64,000 nucleotides of DNA, taken from Octopus sinensis. Taxonomy: Eukaryota. The position numbers and the translations under genes were made by a program. The notes under the pieces are model-generated. The model saw only the letters and a list, made by a program, of their open reading frames with translations, did no database searches and was not told where the DNA came from. The stretch lies in NCBI RefSeq assembly GCF_006345805.1, contig NC_043002.1, positions 85,126,001 through 85,190,000 on the forward strand. Reading direction: 5' to 3'. Of this stretch, positions 2,108 through 64,000 are shown piece by piece (within the stretch, counting starts at the first letter, position 1; each line of letters opens with the position of its first letter).

Positions 2108-3146
2108 ACGTCTACTAGATTCAAAAGAGCTAATTGGACGTATTAGCGTCCAAGTCAAAGATTTACGTACGGGGACAGCGATTATATATCACCTGAGGAG
2201 ATACAACTGGATCCCATTATACAGGTAAACCGTTGCTTAATTAAAACCTGTGTATATGTGGATCTATGTTGTATCGAAACATGTGTAGTGTTTATTAAAT
2301 AGCTGTCTAAACGTACTCATTCCTGTTGACTCTATTCAATTTTTATCTTTCATCCTTTCAGGGTCGATAAATCAAGTACCAGTTGCATACTTGGGTTGAT
2401 CTAATCGACTGGTTCCCTCCCTCCAAAATTTGGGCCTTGTGCCAAGTGTAGAAAAGCATATATGTGTGTGTGTGTGTGTGTGTGTGTATAAACTAGTTTG
2501 ATAAGTACCAACGTACGAAACTCTCGGACCTTGAGTCACTCTGTTGTTTCTGCTAAATATTAATAAATATGTGTGTATGCCCGTGTGTGTGTCTTTGTGT
2601 ATCTGTCCCCCATTACCTCTTGACAACCGATGCTGGTGTGTTTACATCTCTGTTACTTAGCGGTTCGCAAAAGAGACCGATCGAGTAAGTATCAGGCTTT
2701 AAAACAAAAGATTAGTACTGGAGTCGATTCATGCGACAAAAAATTCACCAAGGCGGTGCCCAGCATGGCTGCAGTCTAATGACTGAAAAAAGTAAACTAG
2801 TTTGATAAGTGCCAGTGCACGAAACTCTCGAGCCTTGAGTCACTCTTTTGTTTCTGCTATTTATACACACACACACACACACACAGAGTTTAATTCTCAC
2901 ATACATCATATAAATACACATTTATTTTCATGTGCGAAATGAATATCGTTTATTCAGGCAACTTAAAGTAGTTACCTCCCTTATCATTAAAACTCTCTAA
3001 TTTCTCAGAAAGCACTTTAATTCATACTACACGTGTTTGGGCGCCATCATTAACTGAATCCTTTATTCAGTTTAAAATTTGCGCCAGCTTCTTCATTCTT
3101 GTCTCTGTAAAAGAACTTTTTGATTCAATTCATATAATTATACGAT

Positions 3147-3468
3147 ATGTCTATTGGTGTTCCTATCAAGGTACTGCATGAAGCAGAAGGTCACACCGTG
3201 ACCTGTGAAACTACCACAGGCGAAGTATACCGGGGAAAATTAGTCGAAGCTGAAGACAATATGAACTGCCAAATGTCCAATATTAATGTAACATATCGCG
3301 ATGGACGTGTGGCTACGTTGGAGAATGTGTTCATTCGCGGTAGTAAAATACGATTTTTGATTTTACCAGATATGTTAAAGAATGCTCCCATGTTTAAGAA
3401 AGTCCAGGGCAAAGGTGGTACCAGCGGCGGTGCTGGCCGCGGAAAATCTGCAATTTTACGTGCGCAAG
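3147..3468 (+). CDS. SNRPD3: Small nuclear ribonucleoprotein Sm D3, coding exon 1 (codons 1-107 plus 1 nt)
   Basis: Translation [32 protein letters not shown]...[22 protein letters not shown]...[11 protein letters not shown] is recognisably SmD3. Donor CAAG|GTAGGT at 3468/3469, phase 1. Confidence 0.97.
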
Positions 3469-6400
3469 GTAGGTATCTTGATCTGTTTTATTCATCCACT
3501 GATATATAAATATATATATATATATGTGTGTATGCTATTTTACTCGTGTATTTATCATAGTTAACCTTGGCAGAGGTACCGCTCGCCACTAATCTTAATA
3601 AACTACCAGTTTTCAATACTAACATCCGTTTCTTTAAATTTTAAGCCTTTGTATTTCTTCCATGAAAGCTTGTTATCCAAACTTGATTGGTATTTAAATG
3701 CTACCCTTAAAATGCATAAATGAAATAGTGTAAAAACAAAAATCATTTAAAAGTTGTTACTTAACTCAACCCCCGATTGTTGATCTCTAATCACAAGCAT
3801 TCTAACCGTGACCGTTCCGTCTTTTCAGACACAATATATATCGAATTAGAGGCGGAAGTCTGAAATAAGTTGCCCACTGTTCGATTTTTCTCTGTTCTGA
3901 CGCCTGTTTTTCTGTTTTTCACTCCACACTTCAAAATGATGTGGAAAAGCTTGTTTATGGAAACAAATTTTAAAAAATTTATGATTATTTCTTTAAAAAA
4001 AAAACTTCGTCCCCTTCGCCCATATATATATGAATAGATGTGTTGCTTTCTAAATTTCGTGGTATTTACTGAAATTTTTTGAAAACATTCACATCTACGG
4101 ACCATGTGTGCTGCGGTATAGTGGCAAAAACAAGTAATCCTCATCAAGCAGATAGATCTATTATCAAAAGAGTTTCATGTATTTATTGGCGGAGGTTATT
4201 TTCGAAAAAATTCAAAATTTAAAGGGGGGGGGGGGGGAATTTCTTTTTTTGCATATTCGTAATCTCCGACATCCAGAACTAGGAATCCGAAAAAAATTTT
4301 TTTCTAAAACAAAATGCATTTTTCAAGGAGAGGTGCGATTGTGTAACTCGTTGTGGAACAAATATTACAAGGTATTTCGTTTGCAAAAGAGCGATATATG
4401 TTGGACAGGCGTTGCTGTGTGGTAAGAAGTTTGCATCCCTATCATAATTTTGGTTTTAGTCCCGCTACGTGAGCACCTGTCCTGTACTATAGCTCCGGGC
4501 CTACTAAAGCCTTGTGAGTGAATTTGATAGATGGAAATTGAAAGAAGCTCGCCGTGTGTGTATGTGTGTTTCCCTCTGCCATCGTTTGAGAACCGGTGCT
4601 GGTTTGTTTACGTCTCCGCAACTTAGACATTCGGCAAGAGACCAATAGAATGATTAACCGGCTTGGCGGCGAGCTGACAGAAACGTTAGCCTTTCATCCT
4701 TTCGGGGTCGATAAATTAAGTACCAGTTACGCACTGGGGTCGATGTAATCGACTTAATACCTATGTCTGTCCTTGTTTGTCCCCTCTGTGTTTAGCCCCT
4801 TGTGGGTAATAAAGAAATAGGTATTTCGTCTGCCGTTACGTTCTGAGTTCAAATTCCGCCGAGGTCGACTTTGCATTTCATCCTTTCGGGGTCGATTAAA
4901 TAAGTACCAGTTACGCACTGGGTCAATGTAATCGACTTAATCCCTTTGTCTGTCCTTGTTTGTCCCCTCTATGTTTAGCCCCCCTGTGGGCAATAAATAA
5001 ATTAACCGGCTTGGCGAAATTCTCTTTTAAACTCCCATATAACCCCTCGTGACTTTCGGGGTGGGTGGAATTTTCAGAAAATGTTTGCGAACCTGTAGTT
5101 CTACACACGGGAAACCATACGATTATACAATTTTTTTTTTTTCGAAATTATTATCATTATTATTATTTAATCACAGTATTGAGGACGATTTGTACAACTA
5201 AATCCATGAATGCAATGTCCAATGATACGAACAGGTAAAAGATACATATACGACAGATCTCCACGCAGTTACGTTTACTCACAAGAGTAAACGTAATAGT
5301 CACGGTATCAACCTGACTATTGGATGCTGTTTATACACTACTAGTCACAATACGCTTCCTCACATTTTTGTAGTCTTCCGATGATGCCACCACCCTGCTG
5401 GCTGGGCAGGCAAGCAGGCCAATACCCTCCCCCGCCCCCTATGGGCCACAAATCCATTACAGAGTTGCCCATTTACAACTGAGTAATGTGAAATGAAGTG
5501 TTTTGCTCAAGAACACAATGCACAGCCAATCTGGGAATTAAAACCCTGGTCTTGCAGTCATGTGTGTGACAGCCTAACTACTAGGCTGAGCGCCTTCACA
5601 TGCTTTATATTCTCTTACTTGTTTCAGTCATTTGACTGTGGCTATGCTGGAGCACCGCCTTAAAAGGTTATTTGGTCGAAGAAATTGACCCCAGGACTTA
5701 AGTCTTTGTAAACCCAGTACTTATTCTACTGGTCTCTTTTGCCAAACCACTAAGTTACCTAGACATAAACACACCAACATCGGTTGTCAAGTGATAGTGA
5801 GGGAACAAAGACACATACCTAAATATATATATATAGATATGCAATGGGCTTCTTTCAGTTTCCATCTACCAAATCCACTCATATGGCTTTGGTTAGCTCG
5901 AGACTATAGTAGAAGGCATTTGCCTAAAGTGTCACGCTGTGGGACTGAACCCAGAACCATGCGGTTGGGAAACAAGCTTCTTTAAAAATTTTGTTTTAAA
6001 TCAGAGTTTAAAATACGGACAGTCTGAATTTTTGGCTTAAATCTCAGCAATAGGCCATTAAATGTGTTTGTGGGGAGAAAGATATTGATGAACATCACTG
6101 CATCAGACTGACAAAACAAATGAGGAGGGCATAAGGTGGTCATAAGATGTGCTAAAAATAACAGCTAAATAGTTCTTAAATCACACACTGAAACATCTTT
6201 TTTGCTTGGTTTTTGCATAATTGTATGAATTTAAGTGTCTATAATACAAATTCCCAAAAAAGTTATCAGGGGGTTATATGGCATGCTTATGGCATAACTC
6301 TGCTTACGTATATTTTCCTTTTTTATGATAGCATGGCTTGACCAGTGATTCTCAACCATGGTCCATGTAAGATTTTGTTAAAATTTAAGTGCAATAAACT

Positions 6401-9135
6401 GGTTTTATTTCTAAAATACACAAAATATTTAAGCATTTTTTTAAATACAGTTTCTAATAATATTTAATCATAGCATTATAATAAAAGTTTTTTAGATATT
6501 GAATGGCTGCAAGGGTTCTTCCTCCTTGAATAAAATAAGAATCAAAGAGGTCCATCATCATCATCGTTTAATGTCCGCTTTCCATGGGTTGGATGATTTG
6601 ACTGAGGACTGGCGAACCAGATGGCTGCACCGGGCTCCAATCTTGATCTGGCAGTTTCTACAGCTGGATGCCCTTCCTAACACCAACCACTCTGAAAGTG
6701 TAGTGGGTGCTTTTATATGCCACCGGCACGAGGGCCAGTCAGGCGGTACTCGCAACGGCCACGCTTGAAAGGTGTTTTTTACGTGCCACCGGCAATGGGC
6801 AAAAAATGGTTGAGGAGCAATTAGACCAGGGGTTTTCAACCACTTTTTATCTATGAACCCTTTGATTACTAATTTATTCTGGTGGACCCCCATAGCCATT
6901 CAATGTTTAAAAACTAGTTTTATAGATACTTCTTTCAAAATTCTTATTTGATTTTTTAACATTAACTTGTGAAACCTAGCTGTTACTTGCAATATATACC
7001 AATACATACACCTAAAGCAAAATTTTTTCAGAAGCCTTTAAAATACTATTGTGGATCCCTAATTTACTAATTTATTGTGTGGACCCCAGTTGAGAACCAT
7101 TGACTTAGATAAATATATTTGAAGCATTGTTTTACAGTTGGATGCCCTTCTTGTCACTAACTCTCTCTTGTTTTTCAAATAAGGGTTACCTCTGGCATTA
7201 TATTTTGGCTTTGATAGTTTTATCATATCAGTTATGTTTAGGGAACTTGGTGCTATGGAGCCAGTACTAAATTAATCAGAACTGATGTTGTTAGCCCCTA
7301 AGGTCAACTACAATCAAGCCAACCTATTATCAGTGACACATTATCTAGACCATTCTATTTTCTTGAAATATGTAAAGTGTATTCTTCAGTGAGTTCTTTT
7401 TTAAAAAATGATGAGGTATTACTTGAGGGAGATTTGACTGCTGTATTTAGCTGATTGAGCCATCTTGGAACTGCTTATTTCCCTGCAGGATCCAGATTTG
7501 TAGAATTAGAACTGTTTTGAAGAAGGTAAAAATTGTGTTTAGTGATAAGTTTGATCATTTTTTTTTTCTTTCTTCAGCATAGGTGCAAGTGTGGCTGTGT
7601 GGTATGAAGTTTGCTTCCCAACCACATGGTTCCGGGTTCAGTCCCACTGTGTGACACCTTGTGCAAATGTCTTTTGCTATAGCCTCAGACCAACCAAAGC
7701 CTTGTGGGTGGATTTGGTAAATGGAAACTGAGAGAAACCTGTTGTACATATATATATATATAACCATCCGAACGTGGCCGTTGCCAGCGCCGCCCCGACA
7801 GGCCTCTGCCGGTGGCACGTAAAATGCACCATCCGATCATGGCCATTTGCCAGCCTCGTCTGGCACCTGTGCAGGTGGCACGTAAAATGCACCCACTACA
7901 CTCACGGAGTGGTTGGCGTTAGGAAGGGCATCTAGCATGGAAAACGGACGTTAAACGATGACGATATATATATATATATATATTAGAGGAGGTGATCTTT
8001 CATCATCTGACACAAGATCACTTCCTCCAATGCCCCCTCTCCTCTCAAAAGATTTTTTTGTCTTGCAAGTTACTTGGTGACCCTGTCAGTGCACTTAAAA
8101 AGCATCCAGTCCACACTGTAAAGTGGTTGGCATTTGGAAGGGCATCCAGTTGTGAGAACCTTGCCAAAACTGATTTCGCCTGTGCTTGTGCCACATAAAA
8201 GGCACTAAGTCCACTCTGCTGAGTGGTTGGTGTTAAGAGGGGCATCCATGCAAGTGATTATGGCAAATGGAGAAAAAGAAGAGAATAGCATTAGGAGAGA
8301 TAGAAAACACATAAAATAAAGGAAAAGCTAGAGAAAATAAAAGAACAATAATGGTAAATAGTGGCAGTAGTAATGGCGATGATGATATTGTTTGTAACAG
8401 CTGTTGTTCTTGTGTTGGTGTTGATGCCAATGAGAACATTACTCAACAGTTACTTGCACTGAAGTGAATGCTGTCGTGCCTTTCCTATTTTTATTATTTC
8501 AGTCCACAAAAATATTGCCATCAACTCCTTACTTCTTACTTATAACCACCACTTCCATTTACTAACAACCGCATCAAACTATCTGTGTGTGTGTGTTGGC
8601 ACTGGCATGTCTGTGTGGTTAAGAGTTTATTTCCACCTACATGGTTTTGGATTCAGTTCCACTGCCTGACATCTTAGGCGAGTGCCTTCTATGTCTTCTT
8701 GTATAGCTCTGAGCCAACTAAAGCTTTGTAGGTGAATTTGGTAGGCAGAAACTGAAAGAAACCCATTGTGTGTGTGTGTGTATACACATATGTTACATTA
8801 TACATCTATATCCATTCGTCTTATTCCTTTTTTCTCCTGTTTTTCCCAGTTACCATCCCAACTAACACTTGTCACACCTTCATCTTCCATTCCTCTCACC
8901 CTCTTTGTATCTTACCTGCTAATTCATTCCCATCTCCACCACCTCAATAACAACAGACAACTGCAATTCTCAGTTTCCTTGAGTGAAACCATGGAATTTC
9001 TACAGGATTCATTACACTGACTTTTAGAGCTAGTCAGATGTTTAGGTGTTTGTTTCACCTTTGTGACAAGGGGACTGATATTACAATACTTTCTGGGCTC
9101 TAAATGTCTTATACATAGAAAATAATACAAGTTTC

Positions 9136-9506
9136 GGATCTTTTCGTTTTGATCGGCAGTTTTTTCTAGCGGTGCCATATGAAATTGTCACCCATAATTA
9201 TGACCCTAGTATCAATCTATTGCATTTCAATCTGTTTTAGGGGTGGGGGGAAGGGTATCTTTTTTTCTTCACAAATGTAAATAAACCCAATCTGTTTCTT
9301 AAACGAGGGACATATTCATACGGCACAGAATGTTTTTTACCTCAATAGACATCAGTGATTGGTTGAAATTGCAGAAATTGAAAGAAATAAACAACAAATA
9401 TCTTACAAACTATAGAATTTTCTCAATAAAGCCAAGAGTAAAAGATGTTTTATAAACACATTCTACCAGTATACGAAGTTAACTGCCATTCAAACCGAAA
9501 AGATCC
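9136..9506 (+). mobile_element. GGATC MITE, complete
   Basis: TIRs plus perfect 8-bp TSD CAAGTTTC. Confidence 0.88.
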
Positions 9507-33932: not shown

Positions 33933-35656
33933 TTAATATTCCTGGCCCAGGGTGTTCGAACTTGGTCTAAATTTTTTGATGAAATAAAGTTCTTTATTTT
34001 GGCGTTGGGTGAAGGTTACGCTGTCACTGAATTTGTAAAGTGGGTAAGTTGTAAATTTCGGATTTTCATTTGTAGCACATCTATCTATGTGTCCGCTGAC
34101 CGGTATTTTCCGGTATTCAGGGTTTCTAATTTGGGATTTATGCACCGCCATCCTTTTACGTAAGCTATTTTTTGTATGGCCTATATACTGCCTATTGCAG
34201 CCTGCGCATGTTAAGACGTAAATTAAGTTTTCTGATGCACAGGTGAAGTTTGTTCTAATGGTGAACTGATGGCCTTATTCTAGTATAAATTCTGAACCTT
34301 CTACCAAGATGACACAGATTCCGCAGTTGGGCCTTCCACATTTTCTAACTGCTGGTTTTGTGGTTGATGTTGAGTGCAGTTTAGCTTGGGTTAAAATCCT
34401 TTTCAAGGATTTTGGTTGCCGTTTACTTTTAATGATGGTGTGTGTTTCGAGGATCCGGTTCATCTTTGGGTCTCCCTTTAGTAGGGCTGTGCTTTGTAGT
34501 ATGGTGCTGAAGGCCTCATTATTAGGTGGGTTGTGTGTAGAGATGTAGGGAAGGGTTTTTAATTTTTCTTTCTTTTTTGGTTTTGTTTGTCTCAGGTCTT
34601 CTATACTTAATTTAAGTGCCCGTTGGATTGCACTGTCTATTAGGGGCTGTGGATAATTTCTATTTATGAGTGTAGTTCTAAGTTCCTGGAGACGTGTGTG
34701 TCGGGTGTTTGTGTCTGATATTATGGTGCAAATCCTTCTAGCTAAACAAAAAGGGACATTTATTCTAGTGTGTCTTGGGTGGCATGAATCAAAGAGTAGG
34801 TACTGTTTGGAGTCTGTCGGTTTATAATAGATATCTGTCTCTATTTTGTTGCCGGCTTTCTTAATGAGGATGTCTAAAAATGGTAACTCTTCTTCGTTAT
34901 GATCCATCGTGAATTGTATATTATCATTTATTCCATTTAATAGTATTTTAAATTCCTCAAGTTTCTCTATACTTTTATCCCAGAGGATAAAGCAGTCGTC
35001 GAGGTATCTTTTCCAGTTGTTCTGGATATAGGTGGAGAAGGTGTTTCCATATTTCTCGAGTGTTATCTGGTAGAGTATTTTCTCGAGGTATCCCATCACT
35101 AGGTTGGCAAAAGAAGGCGCAGTACGCGTGCCCATCGCTGTTCCCGATCTTTGTCTGTAGAAATTATTGTCAAAAATAAAGTAATTGTTTTCTAAAATAA
35201 ATCTAAGTCCTTCTATTATAAGTTCTTTATTTATGCGAGTTGGGAGTTCAAAGGAGTAGTTATTTAGCCAGAAAGTGATCGCTTCTATTCCTAGGGTGTG
35301 AGGGATATTTGAATAAAGGTTAATTACGTCGAAGGATACTAGAAGGGTTTTCTCATTGACTGTTTTAGGGAGGTGGTTAAGTATGTCTATATCGTCTCTT
35401 ACGTAGCTTTTGATGTGCTTTAGGAAAGGTTTAAGAAGTGTGTCTAAGAAATTGCTGGGGCGGTGAGTTTCACATGCTGGGCCTGCTATTATCGGTCTAA
35501 GTTTAAGATCATTTGGTGAAGGGATTTTGATGAGTATATCGGTAGATGTTTTGCATGTTTCACTAATTATTTGGCTTTTGTGGACTTTAGGGATACCGTA
35601 GAACAAACATGATTTGCACTTGAAGTTAGTGATGTATTCATACTCCTTGTCCGTGA
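33933..35656 (-). mobile_element. Penelope-like retroelement (Neptune-type): RT + Cys linker + GIY-YIG endonuclease, 5'-truncated, one in-frame TAA
   Basis: RT motifs KLRPII, SFDVINLYSNIP, GTAMG..APSFANL, RYLDD, PFLD; linker CGRPNCGIC. After TAA 34275-34277 the same frame reads NLIYVLTCAGCNRQYIGHT...RKRMAVHK...KELYFIKKFRP. The 5' end abuts (TA)n. Confidence 0.92.
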
Positions 35657-35662
35657 TATATA

Positions 35663-35718
<56 letters not shown>
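35657..35718. repeat. (TA)n microsatellite; others near 13686-13772, 31319-31360, 41902-41944
   Basis: Directly visible. Confidence 0.95.
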
Positions 35719-35721
<3 letters not shown>

Positions 35722-35813
35722 AAGTTAATCCAAACATGAAAACACAAAGAGAAAACACAACGCGAGGACGTGGAACAAGAATAGTATTATTGGACGCTCA
35801 GGAAAGAAGAAGG

Positions 35814-49600: not shown

Positions 49601-51016
49601 GCGAACAATTTTTCACTCTGTGACGATGTATTAATGTACGCACAAAGAGTGGTAGTACTAACTGCACTACAGAATTTCAGTTCCGTGTATTGTCTGACAA
49701 TGGACCGGGGCATTGAAAACTTGGTAAAATCTTGTAGAAGGTGTGCGCTAGAAGCCAAGGCACCACCGGTGAAATACCAATTGTAGCCTGAGATGGATAG
49801 TCCGTGGTCCAGGGTACATATAAACTACGCTGGACCAGGGAAAGGCGCGTACTACTTGATCATTGTTGATAGCTTTACCAAGTGGCCGGAAGTATGTGAG
49901 TGCAGTCAACTTACATCGAAGGCAACAATAAAGTTCCTGCACGAACTTTTTACTCGAAACGGTGTTCCGGACACCATAGTATCGGAAAATAGAACAGGAT
50001 ATGAATTCAAGAAATTCTGCAAAATGCTTGCAGTCAAGCACATGTTTACCTCGACCTACCGCCCGAGGTCAAATGGGCAAGCAGAACGATTCGTAGATAC
50101 TCTCAAGCGAGCGCTTAAAAAAGCAAGAAACGAGTTAGGAAATGATGAGGCGCTAACTAAATTCTTAAGTGTGTACAGAAAAACGCCCAATCCCAAAACC
50201 AGTTCAGGCAAGTCGCCTGCAAAGCTAGTATTCACTCGAAGGATTAAATCGATCTTCGACAACTTGTTGCCAAAGGAAAAAACGTATAGAGAAAATACAA
50301 AAAAATTCAACTAAACATTTTGATGTCGGAGACAAAGTCCATTTCAAAATATACAAGAACGGTAAATAGAGTTGGCAGGATGTTGTAGTGACTAAAAGAA
50401 TTGGAAACGCGATATATTTAATAAAAGACCAACGATGGGAGCATAAACGACATTTAAATCAATTAAAGATCAGTCATACAGAAAAAAGGAAGGAAATTCC
50501 AATGGATGTGTTTTACGACATGTTCGATGTACCAGCAGCGAAAGAGATTGAGCCTAGAAGGAGCAGTAGCAGAAAAGGTAAACAGACTGAACACTTACAA
50601 ATAATTCCTAAGCGGAAAAGGTGCTGAACTCCATAGGGAAGAAAAATTTCAAAAAGGATGGCGGAGGGGGGGGGGGGCGGTGGAAAGAAAGGAAGAAAAA
50701 ATAATAAAATAGATTTTGTTTCCTACGGAACTCGAAATCTCAAAAGGGAAGATGTTGTGGCGAGTGCCACGACACCCCTGCGAGAATAGACTTAACCGAA
50801 CGACTATAAATAGTAGCGGTCTGAGTGAAAGACAGAGTAGGCGTTAATTGCAGGAAGTTGTAAGGTGTCGTTTTGGTAGTTTGTCGGAATATCATTTGTT
50901 GGCTCGTGTATAATTCGTGGAGAATTTGTTGGATTGCTACGTTGTTGCTACCCTGCATCGTTAAATGTTTTATTGTTATTATGCGGTTATAGTGTAAAAA
51001 CAGTATTGTCATAACA
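46700..51016 (+). mobile_element. Degenerate Gypsy/Ty3 LTR retrotransposon (Mag-like): gag, protease, RT, RNase H, integrase, PPT and one LTR
   Basis: gag FKGLIFVQGL..KDAEIRARIL; protease LQLDTASDISVI; RT ...LDLSDAYLQ...QQVMDAML..YLDN; RNase [17 protein letters not shown]; integrase PWSRVH..LIIVDSFTKWPE..SNGQAERFV. Many stops and frameshifts. PPT AAAAGGGAAGA precedes an LTR at 50753-51016 (TGTTG...TAACA). Confidence 0.92.
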
Positions 51017-59310: not shown

Positions 59311-59324
59311 ATTCATGTACCATC

Positions 59325-61800
59325 ATCATCATCATTCATGGCCCATGTTTCACTGCTGTGTAGCATGGATGTTTGCACACATGCATCATACAGTCTAACT
59401 TTCACTCTGAGCAAGAGGCTCTTTGTTACCAGCAGAGGTAGGAGCTTTCTAAACTTTACCCAGGCTATTCTTATTCTAGCGGCTATGCTCTCTGAGCATC
59501 CACCTCCACTACAGACTTGGTCACCTAGGTAGCCGAAGCTATCAACTACTTCTAGTTTCTCCCCTTGACATGTGATGGAATCTGTTCTCTGTATGCTTTT
59601 GGTGTTTATTGCCCCTGTGCATCTGCCACACACAAAAACTATCTTCTCAGTTAACCCCCCTTTGATATTGCTGCACTTCTTATGTGTCGATAGCTTACAC
59701 TGGGTCCATCCTATGGAGTTTCTACCTATGCCTTTTCTACAGATTGAGCAGGGCCATCTACTTGATATGGTTTGTGATTTGACTGCTTTCTTACTTACTA
59801 GTACTTTGGTTTTTGTTAGATTGGCTCTAAGGCCTTTCAATTCTAGACCTTGCTTCCACACCAAAAACTTCATCTTTAGTTCAGCTATTAGGGCAAGGTC
59901 ATCAGCACAGAGGAACTCCCAGGCGCAGCCTTTCTTGAATTCCCCTGTTATTGCCTTGAGGACTATGATGAATAAGAGGGGACTGAGGACTGATCCTTTG
60001 TGAACCCCTACTTCTACCCAGAATTCCTCACTATACTTGTTGCCAACCCTTACCTTACTGATTGCATCTCTGTACAAGGCTTGTACAGCTCTTACCAACT
60101 ACTCATCTATACCTAGTTCCCACATTGACCACCAGATAAGGGTTCGGGGGACTCTGTCAAAGGCTTTTGGCTAGGTATTTCTCCTGCAGTTGCCTTACCA
60201 GAAATATAGCATCAGTGGTGCTTCTACCTTGCACAAAAGCAAACTGCATATCATCTAGGCTAACTCTCTCCCTAATTAGTAGGGCTATGACCCTCTTCGT
60301 GACTTTCATTACCTGATCCAGCAATTTGATACACTTGTAGTTATTTCTATCTAATGCATCACCTTTACCTTCATAGCAGTTGACTATAGTACTGCTACAC
60401 CAGTCACTGGGTATGACTCCTTCGTGAATTACCTGATTTACAGTATGGGTAACTAGGCCATAACCCACACCACCAGATATTTTAAGCATCTCTGCAGTAA
60501 TTCCTGTCTTCATATCCATAATTGCTTTATCTGCCAGGGTACTGCCACTGCAAGTAGCTGGTCCCTCAACTGGGTCAACATTTACAGGCTCTCCTCCTCC
60601 CATTCATTCTTCACATTCAGCAGACTTTCATAATGGTATCCCCAAGCATCTTTCTTTGCAGAATCATTAAACACAAGTGTACCATCATCCATGCAGACAC
60701 ATTTCTCTCGTATGACATCAAAATTTTCTTTCACACACTGTCTTGCAATCCAAAATACTTCAGTTCTTTGGTCCTCACATTGCTGAACATTGGCAAGCTT
60801 CTTCTTTTCTGCTTCTACCTTGGCTATATATACCTGTCTCCTAACTTCCTTTCTGGCTATCTGATACAGTTCCTTGCTACCCACATTCTTCCAGACTTTC
60901 CAGGCCTGTTTCTTTGCTGTAATGGCCCTGTCTACCATATTATTCAACCTCCACATTACCCTAGGTCTGGAAGGAACTTTGCACCAGGCACAGATTTGGT
61001 CCATGGCACACAGCAAGCTGTCATGCAGGGATTCTCAGTTGCCCCCTATGTCAAGTATGTAGCTTTTCTTCCCTCTCATCAAATTTCTCAAGAGGATGTC
61101 CCTAAATCTCTTACCATGTGAAAAGTTCTTAACCTTCCAAATCCTTCTTTTCCAGATTAGTCTGCTTCTTGGCATCTTTCTGGCCTTGAGTCTAAAGTCA
61201 TTAATAACTAGTCTATGCTGGGGTTACATTCTTCACCAGGGAGGGTCTTTGTATTTAAGAGCAACCATGCATCCCACTGTCTGAAGTTGGTGTTGCAGAT
61301 CAATAGGTTACTTGCATCACAGAACTTCGTTTTGAGAACCAATTTCATGAACACCATGGAAGACACCAGGTTGCCGTTCAACATGTCCATTAAAGTCTCC
61401 AGCCACAAAGATGAGATCATTGTCGCTCATCTTTGAGGTAGCTGGCAGAAGAATATCATAAAAGTGGTTCTTCTGTTCATTTGGTAGGCCCACTTGTAGA
61501 GTGTAGGCAGAGATTATTGTATCTATACTATTCTGCAAGACTAGCCTGAGCTTAAGTACTCTATCGCACACCCTACTACCTCTATGACCCTATCCACTCA
61601 TTTCTCTGCTAGGAGTATGCCCACTTCACCTACTCTGTTACTGTTACCTTCCCAGAAGATTTTATACCTATGTGTCTTGCCTGTGAGGACCCTAGCTGAA
61701 GCTCCTCTCCACCTTACCTCTTGTATGCAGCATACATCAACACATCTCCATTCAAGCATCTCTACAATCTCACTTGACCTACATTGACAGTGCCAACTCT
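59325..61800 (-). mobile_element. Degenerate RTE-clade LINE (APE endonuclease + RT), 3' end missing
   Basis: EN: DVCCIQEVRWRG, FVAGDFNGHV. RT: GRSTTDAIFLVRQLQEK, GVHKGSVLSPLLFIIV, CADDLALIAE, SSETWAM. Multiple frameshifts. Confidence 0.9.
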
Positions 61801-62625
61801 AAAAGCTGGGAAAGGGATGTGGGAGGAAACATGGGAAGGAGAGATATTATTCAGTACCTGAAAAGAAGGTTTCCGCGATCATTTGGTAGACATGTCACAC
61901 AGGCTGTTCTCGTTTTTAACTTATCACAATTTAAACATGTTAAAATTGTTAAAAAATTGTTGTCCCTATTGGGGGTAAGAGTAGGAAACATTGTAAATGA
62001 AAGTGTTATAGGCATTGTAAGTATAAGCGTTATGAGCATTGTAAACATAAGCTTTACTGGTGCTGCAGATATAAATTTAAAACATAAATATGAATGTAAA
62101 TATGCCAATGTTAGATTAAGTAAATGGGTGGGTTGCAATCTGGTTAGGTTAGTCCCTGGCAAGAGAGAGAGTGGGAAGTGGGGGCCACGGGTGAGATTGC
62201 AGGTATGAGAGAGGAGACTACCAGTACGGAAGGGGATTTCCGGTTAGATAAGCAAGATTTCCGATATTGGTGGTAGTGGTGTGTGTGGGGTGGGGCGTTA
62301 AACTATATTTTTAATATATATACACTTCATGAATATTGTTTGGCATAGTTTTCTATGACTGATAATTTAATTTTAAAAATTTCTGTCAAATTTGTTTGGC
62401 TTTAAAAGTTCATATTTTATATTTCTTCTCTTTCCAGGGACCACTATTTGGAAACCGATTTGTGTTTTTTTACAAAAAAGGCGTCAGTCGATTCATCACA
62501 TGTTAGAAATAGTCTAAGTGGACAAATGTTTTGATAAAGTTTCTAATGTGCTAGATATACAGAAACTTCTGATACGAAGGCAAAGAGTGGTGGGGAAAAG
62601 GGTAAAAGAAAATAAACAAACAAAA

Positions 62626-63360
62626 ATGAATCTGAATGAGAAAGATGAGTCAAAGGCAGCAGAAAGTGGTGAAAATAATTCCAAAACAAAACCACCGAGT
62701 TCAGTTGATTGGTCAAAGTATGGTGTACAGCGGTGTTCTGGTTGTAAATTCACTACAGATGACCATGGCTTATTCGATGCACACATCTCAATGTGTCGTT
62801 CTTTCAACAAGAAAAGGATCGCTACAACTAATCAGCCAGATAATGAAAAAAAGAAATACAAGAAACTCCTGCTTCAACTTGAAGAGCCATACCTGGAAGG
62901 TAAAACTCCTTCTACAACTACTTTCTTGTTACGGTGTTTCCATTGTCGTGGCTATTTTTCTAAAGTCACTTCTATTAAAAATCACCATTCTGTAAAACAT
63001 GCAAGTAAGAATTTAATGTTTAGTCTTGTTCCTTTTGAGGATATTGTAAACCCAGAAAAAGTGACATCAGTTCCTGTAACTGATTCCCATGTAGATCAAC
63101 AAAATATTAGCTCTTCAATGTCTACTCCACAGCCAAGTTCTCCTATACCTATCACTGCTACCAAAACTGCTTGCTCATCTCATGGAATCATTCAGCCATC
63201 TTCTGTAAAGTCATCTTCAATGGTGAAAATTATGTCTGCTGTGAAAACACCTTTGAATCAGATGCCTATTGCAAAGAAAGATAATCTTCAGGCATGTCAG
63301 CCAAGAAAGAGTTTTGAGGAAAAATTCTTCAGAGAACAGTGTGTGCCGCCAGTCAAGTGA
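62626..63360 (+). CDS. Zinc-finger protein (C2HC + C2H2), ORF up to the first stop (244 aa from ATG 62626)
   Basis: Acceptor TTTCCAG ends at 62437. First in-frame ATG is in a CAAAAATG context. Fingers CSGC-X12-HISMC (62734-62796) and CFHC-X12-HHSVKH (62935-63000), then an S/T/P-rich region. Family not recognised. Confidence 0.85.
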   Translation: MNLNEKDESKAAESGENNSKTKPPSSVDWSKYGVQRCSGCKFTTDDHGLFDAHISMCRSFNKKRIATTNQPDNEKKKYKKLLLQLEEPYLEGKTPSTTTFLLRCFHCRGYFSKVTSIKNHHSVKHASKNLMFSLVPFEDIVNPEKVTSVPVTDSHVDQQNISSSMSTPQPSSPIPITATKTACSSHGIIQPSSVKSSSMVKIMSAVKTPLNQMPIAKKDNLQACQPRKSFEEKFFREQCVPPVK

Positions 63361-64000
63361 CTAGACGGCCAACTGAAATTAGATGGATTACCAGGACAAA
63401 CTAATTCTCTAATTATCAGTGATGCCTCGACTGACACTCCATCTCAAGAGATGGCTAAGCATAACAAGGAAAAAACCTCTACTGGATCTTCAAAAAGTGA
63501 TTCACCTATAATTGTATCACCTGTAACAGCTGGACCTGTTAATCTTTCACAAAAGCAAATGTCTTACTCACCCAATCAGAAAAAACATGCAACTTTTCAG
63601 AAGAAATCTCCTGTTTTATTGCCAAATATATTACCAAAAAACTATTTAGGTACTATACAAACACCTTCAAACCAGAATTTTCAAATCGTTTGTGCTGCAC
63701 CTGAAGTACAGAGTTCTGTCAAAGTTTCTGAAGCTGTGCCACCTATTATTATTAATATTCCAAACACAACCAATTCTTTTGGTTACCAGCCACTTCTCAT
63801 TGGATCTTCAAACAAACAAATACCTGTAAGTTCAGTTCCAGTCACACCTGTGACTGAATCCTCAGCTACAAAAACATTTGCTTCTAATGTCCCAACAGCA
63901 ACTACCACTTCTCTTGCTCCATATGCACTTGCAACCAATGTTCAGGTTAATAACCAAAATCAAGACATTTTAGGATTTTTTGTTCGCCCTAATTTGGTAA
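63361..64000 (+). CDS. In-frame extension of the zinc-finger ORF beyond TGA (putative readthrough region, open to the window end)
   Basis: Hand-translated: 213 consecutive sense codons (LDGQLKLDGLPGQTNSLIISD...QDILGFFVRPNLV) in the same frame, with similar S/T/P/V/N-rich composition. Absent from the ORF track, probably because it runs off the window. Confidence 0.75.

Follow-up and report, generated by a model that had tools for sequence, protein, structure and literature searches.

A conserved in-frame UGA-CUAG stop in an octopod zinc-finger gene: a probable case of programmed readthrough

Why should a reading frame that ends at a stop codon continue beyond it, in the same phase and without a further stop, for hundreds of codons? 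The question is raised by a gene at the end of a 64,000-nucleotide (nt) stretch of Octopus sinensis DNA (NCBI RefSeq assembly GCF_006345805.1, contig NC_043002.1, positions 85,126,001 to 85,190,000 of the forward strand), here called the window. All coordinates are window positions; those above 64000 are window-equivalent and were read from the next 20 kb of the genome. On the forward strand, an open reading frame (ORF1) starts at ATG 62626 and runs for 244 codons to the ending ...CCA GTC AAG TGA CTA GAC, with the TGA at 63358-63360. A first-pass annotation, made from the letters of the window, had reported this ending and a frame that stays open for 213 more codons to the window end, and both statements were borne out. 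In the genome the frame is open for 712 codons (ORF2), as far as a tandem stop, TGA GCA TAG (65497-65505), which differs from the internal TGA CTA GAC. The sequence AATAAA lies 14 nt beyond this terminator.

Given the local base frequencies (A 34%, T 30%), a codon drawn at random would be a stop with p = 0.067, and the chance of an open frame after the TGA is 3.5e-7 for 213 codons and 2.6e-22 for 712. The other five frames of the post-stop stretch contain 26 to 78 stops, and none of 2000 shuffles left the frame open. The coding region consists of one exon, the full-length product would have 957 residues, and the UGA is codon 245, about a quarter of the way into the gene. Of the two isoforms proposed in the first-pass annotation, 244 and more than 458 amino acids (aa) long, the shorter keeps its length, while the longer would reach 957 aa. 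The UGA is directly flanked on its 3' side by CUAG (TGA CTA G, 63358-63364), the arrangement found in a known class of readthrough stops, and programmed UGA readthrough probably joins ORF1 and ORF2.

Homologous loci were compared in O. sinensis, O. vulgaris, O. bimaculoides, an octopodid represented by Logan contigs, and Argonauta hians, i.e. five assemblies from four lineages. The sequence TGA CTA GAC occupies the homologous codon in all five, and at every locus ORF1 and ORF2 lie in one frame with a single TGA between them. Synonymous divergence (dS) between Octopus and Argonauta is 1.0-1.2, and the neutral retention of these nine bases has a probability of about 4e-4. Where a lone in-frame stop is seen in one assembly, the default assumption is an assembly error, a private nonsense allele or a decaying pseudogene, and the first two of these had been listed as alternatives when the locus was first annotated. 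However, the same stop is shared by five independent assemblies from at least four species, other stops and frameshifts are absent, and substitution is of the coding type on both sides. From its presence in five assemblies and four lineages, together with the low probability of neutral retention, assembly error, private allele and recent pseudogenisation are therefore excluded, and we give this explanation practically no weight. The orthologue comparison that had been proposed earlier thus found TGA-CTAG invariant out to Argonauta.

All four public genome annotations split or truncate the gene, giving products of 244-248 aa and/or 425-691 aa. A 691-aa product is annotated in O. bimaculoides, and pairs of separate products in O. 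vulgaris (244 and 682 aa), the Logan-contig octopodid (244 and 687 aa) and Argonauta hians (248 and 425 aa). The products of 682-691 aa begin at AUG 63451.

Ratios of nonsynonymous to synonymous divergence (dN/dS), calculated by the method of Nei and Gojobori, were 0.25-0.55 for ORF1 and 0.32-0.46 for ORF2; most Octopus-Argonauta comparisons, as well as several within Octopus, gave values significantly below 1. By segment of ORF2, the ratio was 0.09-0.21 in the C-terminal finger cluster and 0.5-0.7 in the linker. ORF2 is open for 629-721 codons in every lineage, and all 20 pairwise insertions and deletions among the three Octopus-lineage species (5, 9 and 6) are multiples of three. Coding-type substitution on both sides of the stop, for which a test had been suggested, was found (dN/dS 0.25-0.55), and constraint in the same frame extends past the stop except in the first 30 codons, which are RNA-constrained. 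The stop, its context, the conservation of both, the coding constraint on either side and the nucleotide constraint 3' of the stop are all directly observed in the sequences.

The nucleotide constraint was assessed at codon columns where all four lineages share a conserved, degenerate amino acid. From +1 to +29 after the stop, 16 of 16 such codons are identical, compared with 55.6% gene-wide (p=8e-5); upstream of the stop, identity is at background. The proportion of synonymous differences (pS) between Octopus and Argonauta is 0.10 in this zone and about 0.58 elsewhere, and the changes that do occur are mostly nonsynonymous; the constraint is therefore on the RNA and not on the peptide. It is asymmetric, being confined to the downstream side of the stop, which is where readthrough stimulators lie.

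A stem-loop is predicted in the constrained zone, with folding energies of -25.4 and -20.6 kcal/mol and z-scores of -3.0 and -2.7. Its predicted 3-bp basal helix begins 6 nt past the UGA and its main helix 11 nt past it; the latter has 18 bp (11 bp in Argonauta). Both predicted distances fall within the approximately 6-13 nt at which 3' structures stimulate readthrough. In every sequence the main helix is 100% paired; one compensatory change, from A-U to G-C, occurs in Argonauta, where a 15-nt in-frame deletion is confined to the apical part of the stem-loop.

By mutagenesis, UGA-CUAG was found to drive 1.5-31% readthrough in OPRL1, OPRK1, AQP4 and MAPK10, with UGA as the best stop (PMC4132726). 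The identical UGA-CUAG of the vertebrate genes OPRL1, OPRK1, AQP4, MAPK10, MDH1 and VDR is invariant across orthologues, as it is in octopods; there too the extension evolves under coding constraint, and just 3' of the motif nucleotides rather than amino acids are conserved (PMC4132726). The vertebrate extensions are short and modify the C-terminus (13 residues in MAPK10; PMC4132726). The octopus extension, in contrast, comprises 712 codons and carries the main DNA-binding domain. Besides that of MAPK10, the other vertebrate UGA-CUAG extensions are likewise short.

Long extensions are known from Drosophila kelch, headcase and Ptp10D, which also have 3' stem-loops. In kelch, a single UGA lies between two long ORFs, and products of 77 and 160 kDa are made; neurons show high readthrough, and the stimulation was traced to 3' sequences and to conserved 3' stem-loops (10.1101/2020.06.22.165522). 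The two kelch proteins differ in domain content, and there is no sequence relationship between kelch and the octopus gene. The sequence UGA CUA GAC AG is also the alphavirus opal context (type II, UGA-CUA), known from O'nyong-nyong and chikungunya viruses; the extended stem-loops of viruses start at +9 to +16, the gammaretroviral pseudoknot at +12 and one triatovirus stem-loop at +2 (PMC13517186). The octopus gene thus shares 9-11 nt with the alphavirus nsP3/nsP4 junction, and its predicted helices start at +10 and +15, inside the viral range of +9 to +16. It is, however, a cellular gene with a hairpin of 45-60 nt, compared with 126-177 nt for the alphavirus structures, and there is no homology between them; the likeness is convergent use of a ribosomal weakness.

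Readthrough was chosen as the best explanation because the exact motif, its conservation, the constraint confined to the downstream side, the distance of the hairpin and the strict preservation of frame fit together. The readthrough interpretation of the first-pass annotation is accordingly supported by the invariant TGA-CTAG, the coding-type substitution on both sides, the 3' RNA element and an uninterrupted relative described below; that ribosomes read through the UGA, how efficiently they do so and that the hairpin stimulates them are what we infer from the sequences. By this mechanism, one gene of 957 codons in a single exon would have its codon 245, UGA, decoded in two ways. Most ribosomes would stop there and release a 244-aa protein with two finger-like motifs and a disordered tail. 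A fraction would insert Trp, Arg or Cys by means of a near-cognate tRNA, by analogy with other systems, and go on for 712 codons to give a 957-aa protein with a long linker and a C-terminal C2H2 DNA-binding cluster. The leakiness would come from UGA-CUAG(AC) and be boosted by the stem-loop 6-11 nt downstream, which would sit near the mRNA entry channel while the UGA occupies the A site.

The closest relative outside Octopoda has no such interruption. When 1.84 billion representative proteins were searched with a profile, the finger cluster turned up in many very long proteins and the N-terminal domain in two other entries only. The relative, from ENA assembly ERZ21867824, is a protein of 2053 aa encoded in one uninterrupted, intronless frame of about 6.2 kb (3001-9162 of the retrieved locus), with 41% identity to ORF1 in the N-terminal domain and 46% to the end of ORF2 in the finger cluster. 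It continues for about 700 residues beyond the finger cluster, a tail which appears to have been lost in octopods. The octopus genome contains a single copy of the N-terminal domain, and the octopod gene is therefore the sole member of its subfamily in that genome. Because the relative holds both domains in one frame and the octopus genome has this single copy, the fused protein is the normal form of the family. The internal stop would be a derived octopod feature, or at least one absent from the 2053-aa relative. The peptide IVPQVNWRRE of the relative was considered as the counterpart of the octopus VPPVK*LDG and rejected, as MAFFT instead aligns the stop with Ile or Thr in a poorly conserved stretch; the ancestral residue at the stop is therefore not inferable. 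Orthologues from squid and cuttlefish, sought by name, were not found; the search returned only the ERZ21867824 entry and Logan contigs.

The two halves of the protein differ in their domains. ORF2 encodes a long linker rich in Ser, Thr and Pro, with about five C2H2 fingers behind it at the C-terminus. Among PDB entries, the last 189 aa match the finger arrays of PRDM9, ZNF568 and CTCF (E down to 1.8e-15), and Pfam matches to zf-C2H2_4 and zf-Di19 lie below their cut-offs. Tandem fingers of the form C-x2-C...H-x3-5-H, the hallmark of C2H2 zinc-finger proteins, are thus present. In ORF1 the second of the finger-like motifs has a weak Pfam match to Zf-C2H2_ZNF451_C (E=0.17). No Pfam family scored above its cut-off for the ORF1 half, the ORF2 half or the 2053-aa relative. 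The designation as a zinc-finger gene, given from the window, therefore stands, but most of the fingers lie past the window and after the stop, and the 244-aa part has only two isolated finger-like motifs; the further fingers for which a downstream search had been suggested were found as the C2H2 cluster at the C-terminus of ORF2.

Several findings weigh against readthrough. In the 30 codons after the stop the Octopus-Argonauta changes are mostly nonsynonymous (pN/pS 2-3), a pattern which fits models without readthrough too. The hairpin is supported mostly by invariance (24 of 27 pairs are invariant and one covaries), and 92 of 500 shuffles score as well. A conserved AUG stands in good context 31 codons past the stop (63451; invariant, with G at -3 and G at +4), and conserved in-frame GT...AG pairs span the stop. 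The leakiness of UGA-CUAG is carried over to molluscs by analogy, and the most conserved domain would hang on what is usually a minority translation event. The Logan contig with the stop was considered as proof of an unspliced mRNA and rejected as such, as it is genome-collinear through the putative 5' acceptor and ends in repeats, so that it possibly stems from DNA reads. No protein spanning the stop with a sense codon was found in a collection of 5.8 billion proteins, searched with the full-length query and with a 301-aa window across the stop; this speaks weakly against an edited or spliced form being dominant.

Adenosine-to-inosine (A-to-I) editing would convert UGA to UGI, read as UGG (Trp), with the conserved flanking nucleotides serving as the duplex substrate of ADAR; we consider this unlikely. 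Strong nucleotide conservation beside the site is typical of cephalopod editing sites and counts for this explanation. So does a 400-nt fold of the Octopus sequences, in which an imperfect hairpin of 15 pairs is predicted to contain the stop, the A of which pairs 2 bp away from the loop. Recoding is very widespread in coleoids, and published pipelines for these animals already merge ORFs across 'editable' UAG stops, read as UGG (PMC8382921); the supplements of that paper contain no site-level editing table. Stop-loss editing, both in coleoids (UAG to UGG) and in Fusarium PUK1, resembles the octopus case in having a genomic stop inside an intact, constrained ORF and in needing recoding for the full protein. 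In those cases, however, the edited A is that of UAG with a favourable 5' U, and the published stop-loss class is UAG and not UGA, whereas the A of the octopus UGA follows G, a 5' neighbour disfavoured by ADAR across all metazoans examined (PMC9989829). Of the 15 pairs of the stop hairpin, 4 are lost in Argonauta and another one in the Logan-contig octopodid, with no compensating changes, and synonymous turnover in the upstream arm of the hairpin is ordinary. Neither the conserved duplex nor the favourable 5' neighbour that mark ADAR stop-loss sites is thus found here. Editing does not predict the CUAG context either; that the 5.8-billion collection holds no sense-codon protein across the site counts weakly against it, such entries reflecting assembly consensus only. 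Selenocysteine, named as an alternative in the first-pass annotation, would likewise give the UGA a sense, and a conserved in-frame UGA with an adjacent stem-loop resembles selenocysteine redefinition elements (PMC4132726). Yet no Rfam family, those of the selenocysteine insertion sequence (SECIS) included, matched at E<=1 at four loci in four species, scanned to 1.9-6.5 kb past ORF2, where a search for such an element had been suggested. There is no redox-type motif around the site, a nearby Cys is not kept in Argonauta, and the gene's own terminator is also UGA; we hold this explanation to be extremely improbable.

ORF2 could be made separately from AUG 63451, through an internal promoter, an element like an internal ribosome entry site, or reinitiation, in which case the conserved 90 nt would constitute that element and there would be no fused product. 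The AUG and its context are invariant and lie inside an invariant hairpin, which may be part of the readthrough element or may control separate initiation; the spacer evolves like RNA and not like protein, and every public annotation models the pieces apart. What separate translation leaves unexplained is the shared frame, the presence of exactly one stop in four lineages, the 15-nt spacer deletion in Argonauta and the CUAG context; reinitiation past an AUG-rich ORF of 244 codons is not what established scanning rules would lead one to expect, and the relative holds both domains in one chain. We judge it quite improbable. Alternatively, the stop could be removed as part of a very short intron (exitron), with a donor caa|GTGACT at 63357 and an acceptor ctaattctctaattatCAG at 63419. 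This candidate intron would have 63 nt in Octopus and 48 nt in Argonauta, with an in-frame junction GTC AA|T GAT GCC. Its GT and AG are conserved in five of five sequences, two branch-like CTAAT motifs precede the acceptor, as does a stretch with 60-70% pyrimidines, and splice signals packed into a tiny intron could explain the nucleotide conservation. The donor, however, departs from consensus at -1 and +5 in every species, and 48-63 nt is at or under the usual metazoan intron minimum, which counts against it. The multiple-of-three length, the lack of further stops and the UGA-CUAG start all hold though a mini-intron needs none of them, and the synonymous constraint runs 35 nt beyond the proposed acceptor. 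The fused product of about 936 aa that splicing would give is not in the protein collection, a weak negative. Splicing is, in our estimate, slightly more improbable still.

The coordinates of the gene, of its proposed elements and of other ORFs of the window are given in Table 1. Upstream of ORF1, the putative leader is preceded by an acceptor-like sequence, ttctctttccAG, which ends at 62437 and is a putative splice site judged from sequence. The leader contains three tiny upstream ORFs (uORFs), at 62500-62517 (ATG TTA GAA ATA GTC TAA), 62526-62534 (ATG TTT TGA) and 62546-62554 (ATG TGC TAG), all of which are present also in O. bimaculoides and the Logan-contig octopodid, and which may form an extra layer of translational control. 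An overlapping ORF of 119 aa in the +2 frame (62636-62995, forward strand) begins 10 nt past the main ATG. This ORF stays open in O. sinensis, O. bimaculoides and the Logan-contig octopodid and spans only 64 aa in Argonauta, and was rejected as a gene; it is probably due to chance. The rest of the window consists mostly of decayed retroelement pieces, with two reverse-transcriptase ORFs and one integrase-core ORF. The ORFs just upstream of the gene, which we take to be fragments of a non-LTR (long terminal repeat) endonuclease from the way they read, have no Pfam match.

Table 1. Positions of the recoded-stop candidate, its gene and other ORFs of the window
Feature	Position	Strand	Remarks
Putative 5' leader of coding exon	62438..62625	+	Conserved in O. 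bimaculoides and a second octopodid (Logan contigs)
ORF1, N-terminal domain, 244 codons	62626..63357	+	Two finger-like motifs, then Ser/Thr/Pro-rich tail
Finger-like motif 1, C37-x2-C40-x12-H53-x3-C57	62734..62796	+	Four ligands invariant in octopods and distant relatives
Finger-like motif 2, C104-x2-C107-x12-H120-x4-H125 (C2H2)	62935..63000	+	Ligands invariant in octopods and distant relatives
In-frame UGA, codon 245, proposed recoded stop	63358..63360	+	Invariant in five assemblies
CUAGAC 3' of stop	63361..63366	+	Codons CTA and GAC identical in all lineages; CUAG is a known readthrough context
Synonymous-site constraint zone, stop to next in-frame AUG	63361..63453	+	16/16 codons identical; pS 0.10
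Predicted stem-loop	63367..63426	+	RNAalifold and single-sequence folds; main helix 63372-63420
6-bp hairpin CCAUCU-CAAG-AGAUGG, invariant	63439..63454	+	Encloses next in-frame AUG 63451-63453; all pairs invariant, no covariation
ORF2, proposed readthrough extension, 712 codons	63361..64000, on to 65496	+	Coding constraint (dN/dS), Ser/Thr/Pro-rich linker, C-terminal C2H2 fingers
ORF elsewhere in window	34275..35747	-	Decayed retroelement piece
ORF elsewhere in window	49793..50314	+	Decayed retroelement piece
ORF elsewhere in window	59313..60098	-	Decayed retroelement piece
ORF elsewhere in window	60582..61571	-	Decayed retroelement piece

A full-text literature search gave no cephalopod gene described with stop-codon readthrough, and no mollusc case among titles and abstracts; no cephalopod case had been known to the first-pass annotation either. 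Beyond a simple leak, the conserved UGA could be a regulated switch, bypassed efficiently in some tissues, e.g. neurons, through enhanced readthrough, A-to-I editing to UGG, or both. Octopods would in that case toggle between a finger-less protein of 244 aa and a DNA-binding protein of 957 aa from one intronless coding region, an arrangement that the octopod lineage would have evolved from an ancestor whose frame was uninterrupted. This is a speculative proposal, which we think doubtful as a whole.

If readthrough joins the two ORFs, the gene would be the first with programmed readthrough to be described from a cephalopod. The scale would be unusual, as three quarters of the protein, including the most conserved domain, lie behind the stop; to our knowledge, the only cellular parallels for so long an extension are the kelch-type cases of Drosophila. 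The gene would offer a clean test case of readthrough versus RNA editing in the animals with the most pervasive editing. Similar recoded genes may be missed or mis-annotated by cephalopod annotation pipelines, as happened here, where all four annotations split or truncate the gene. Lophotrochozoans would join vertebrates and alphaviruses as users of the UGA-CUAG signal, an extension that would argue for its exploiting a universal property of the eukaryotic ribosome or of eRF1.

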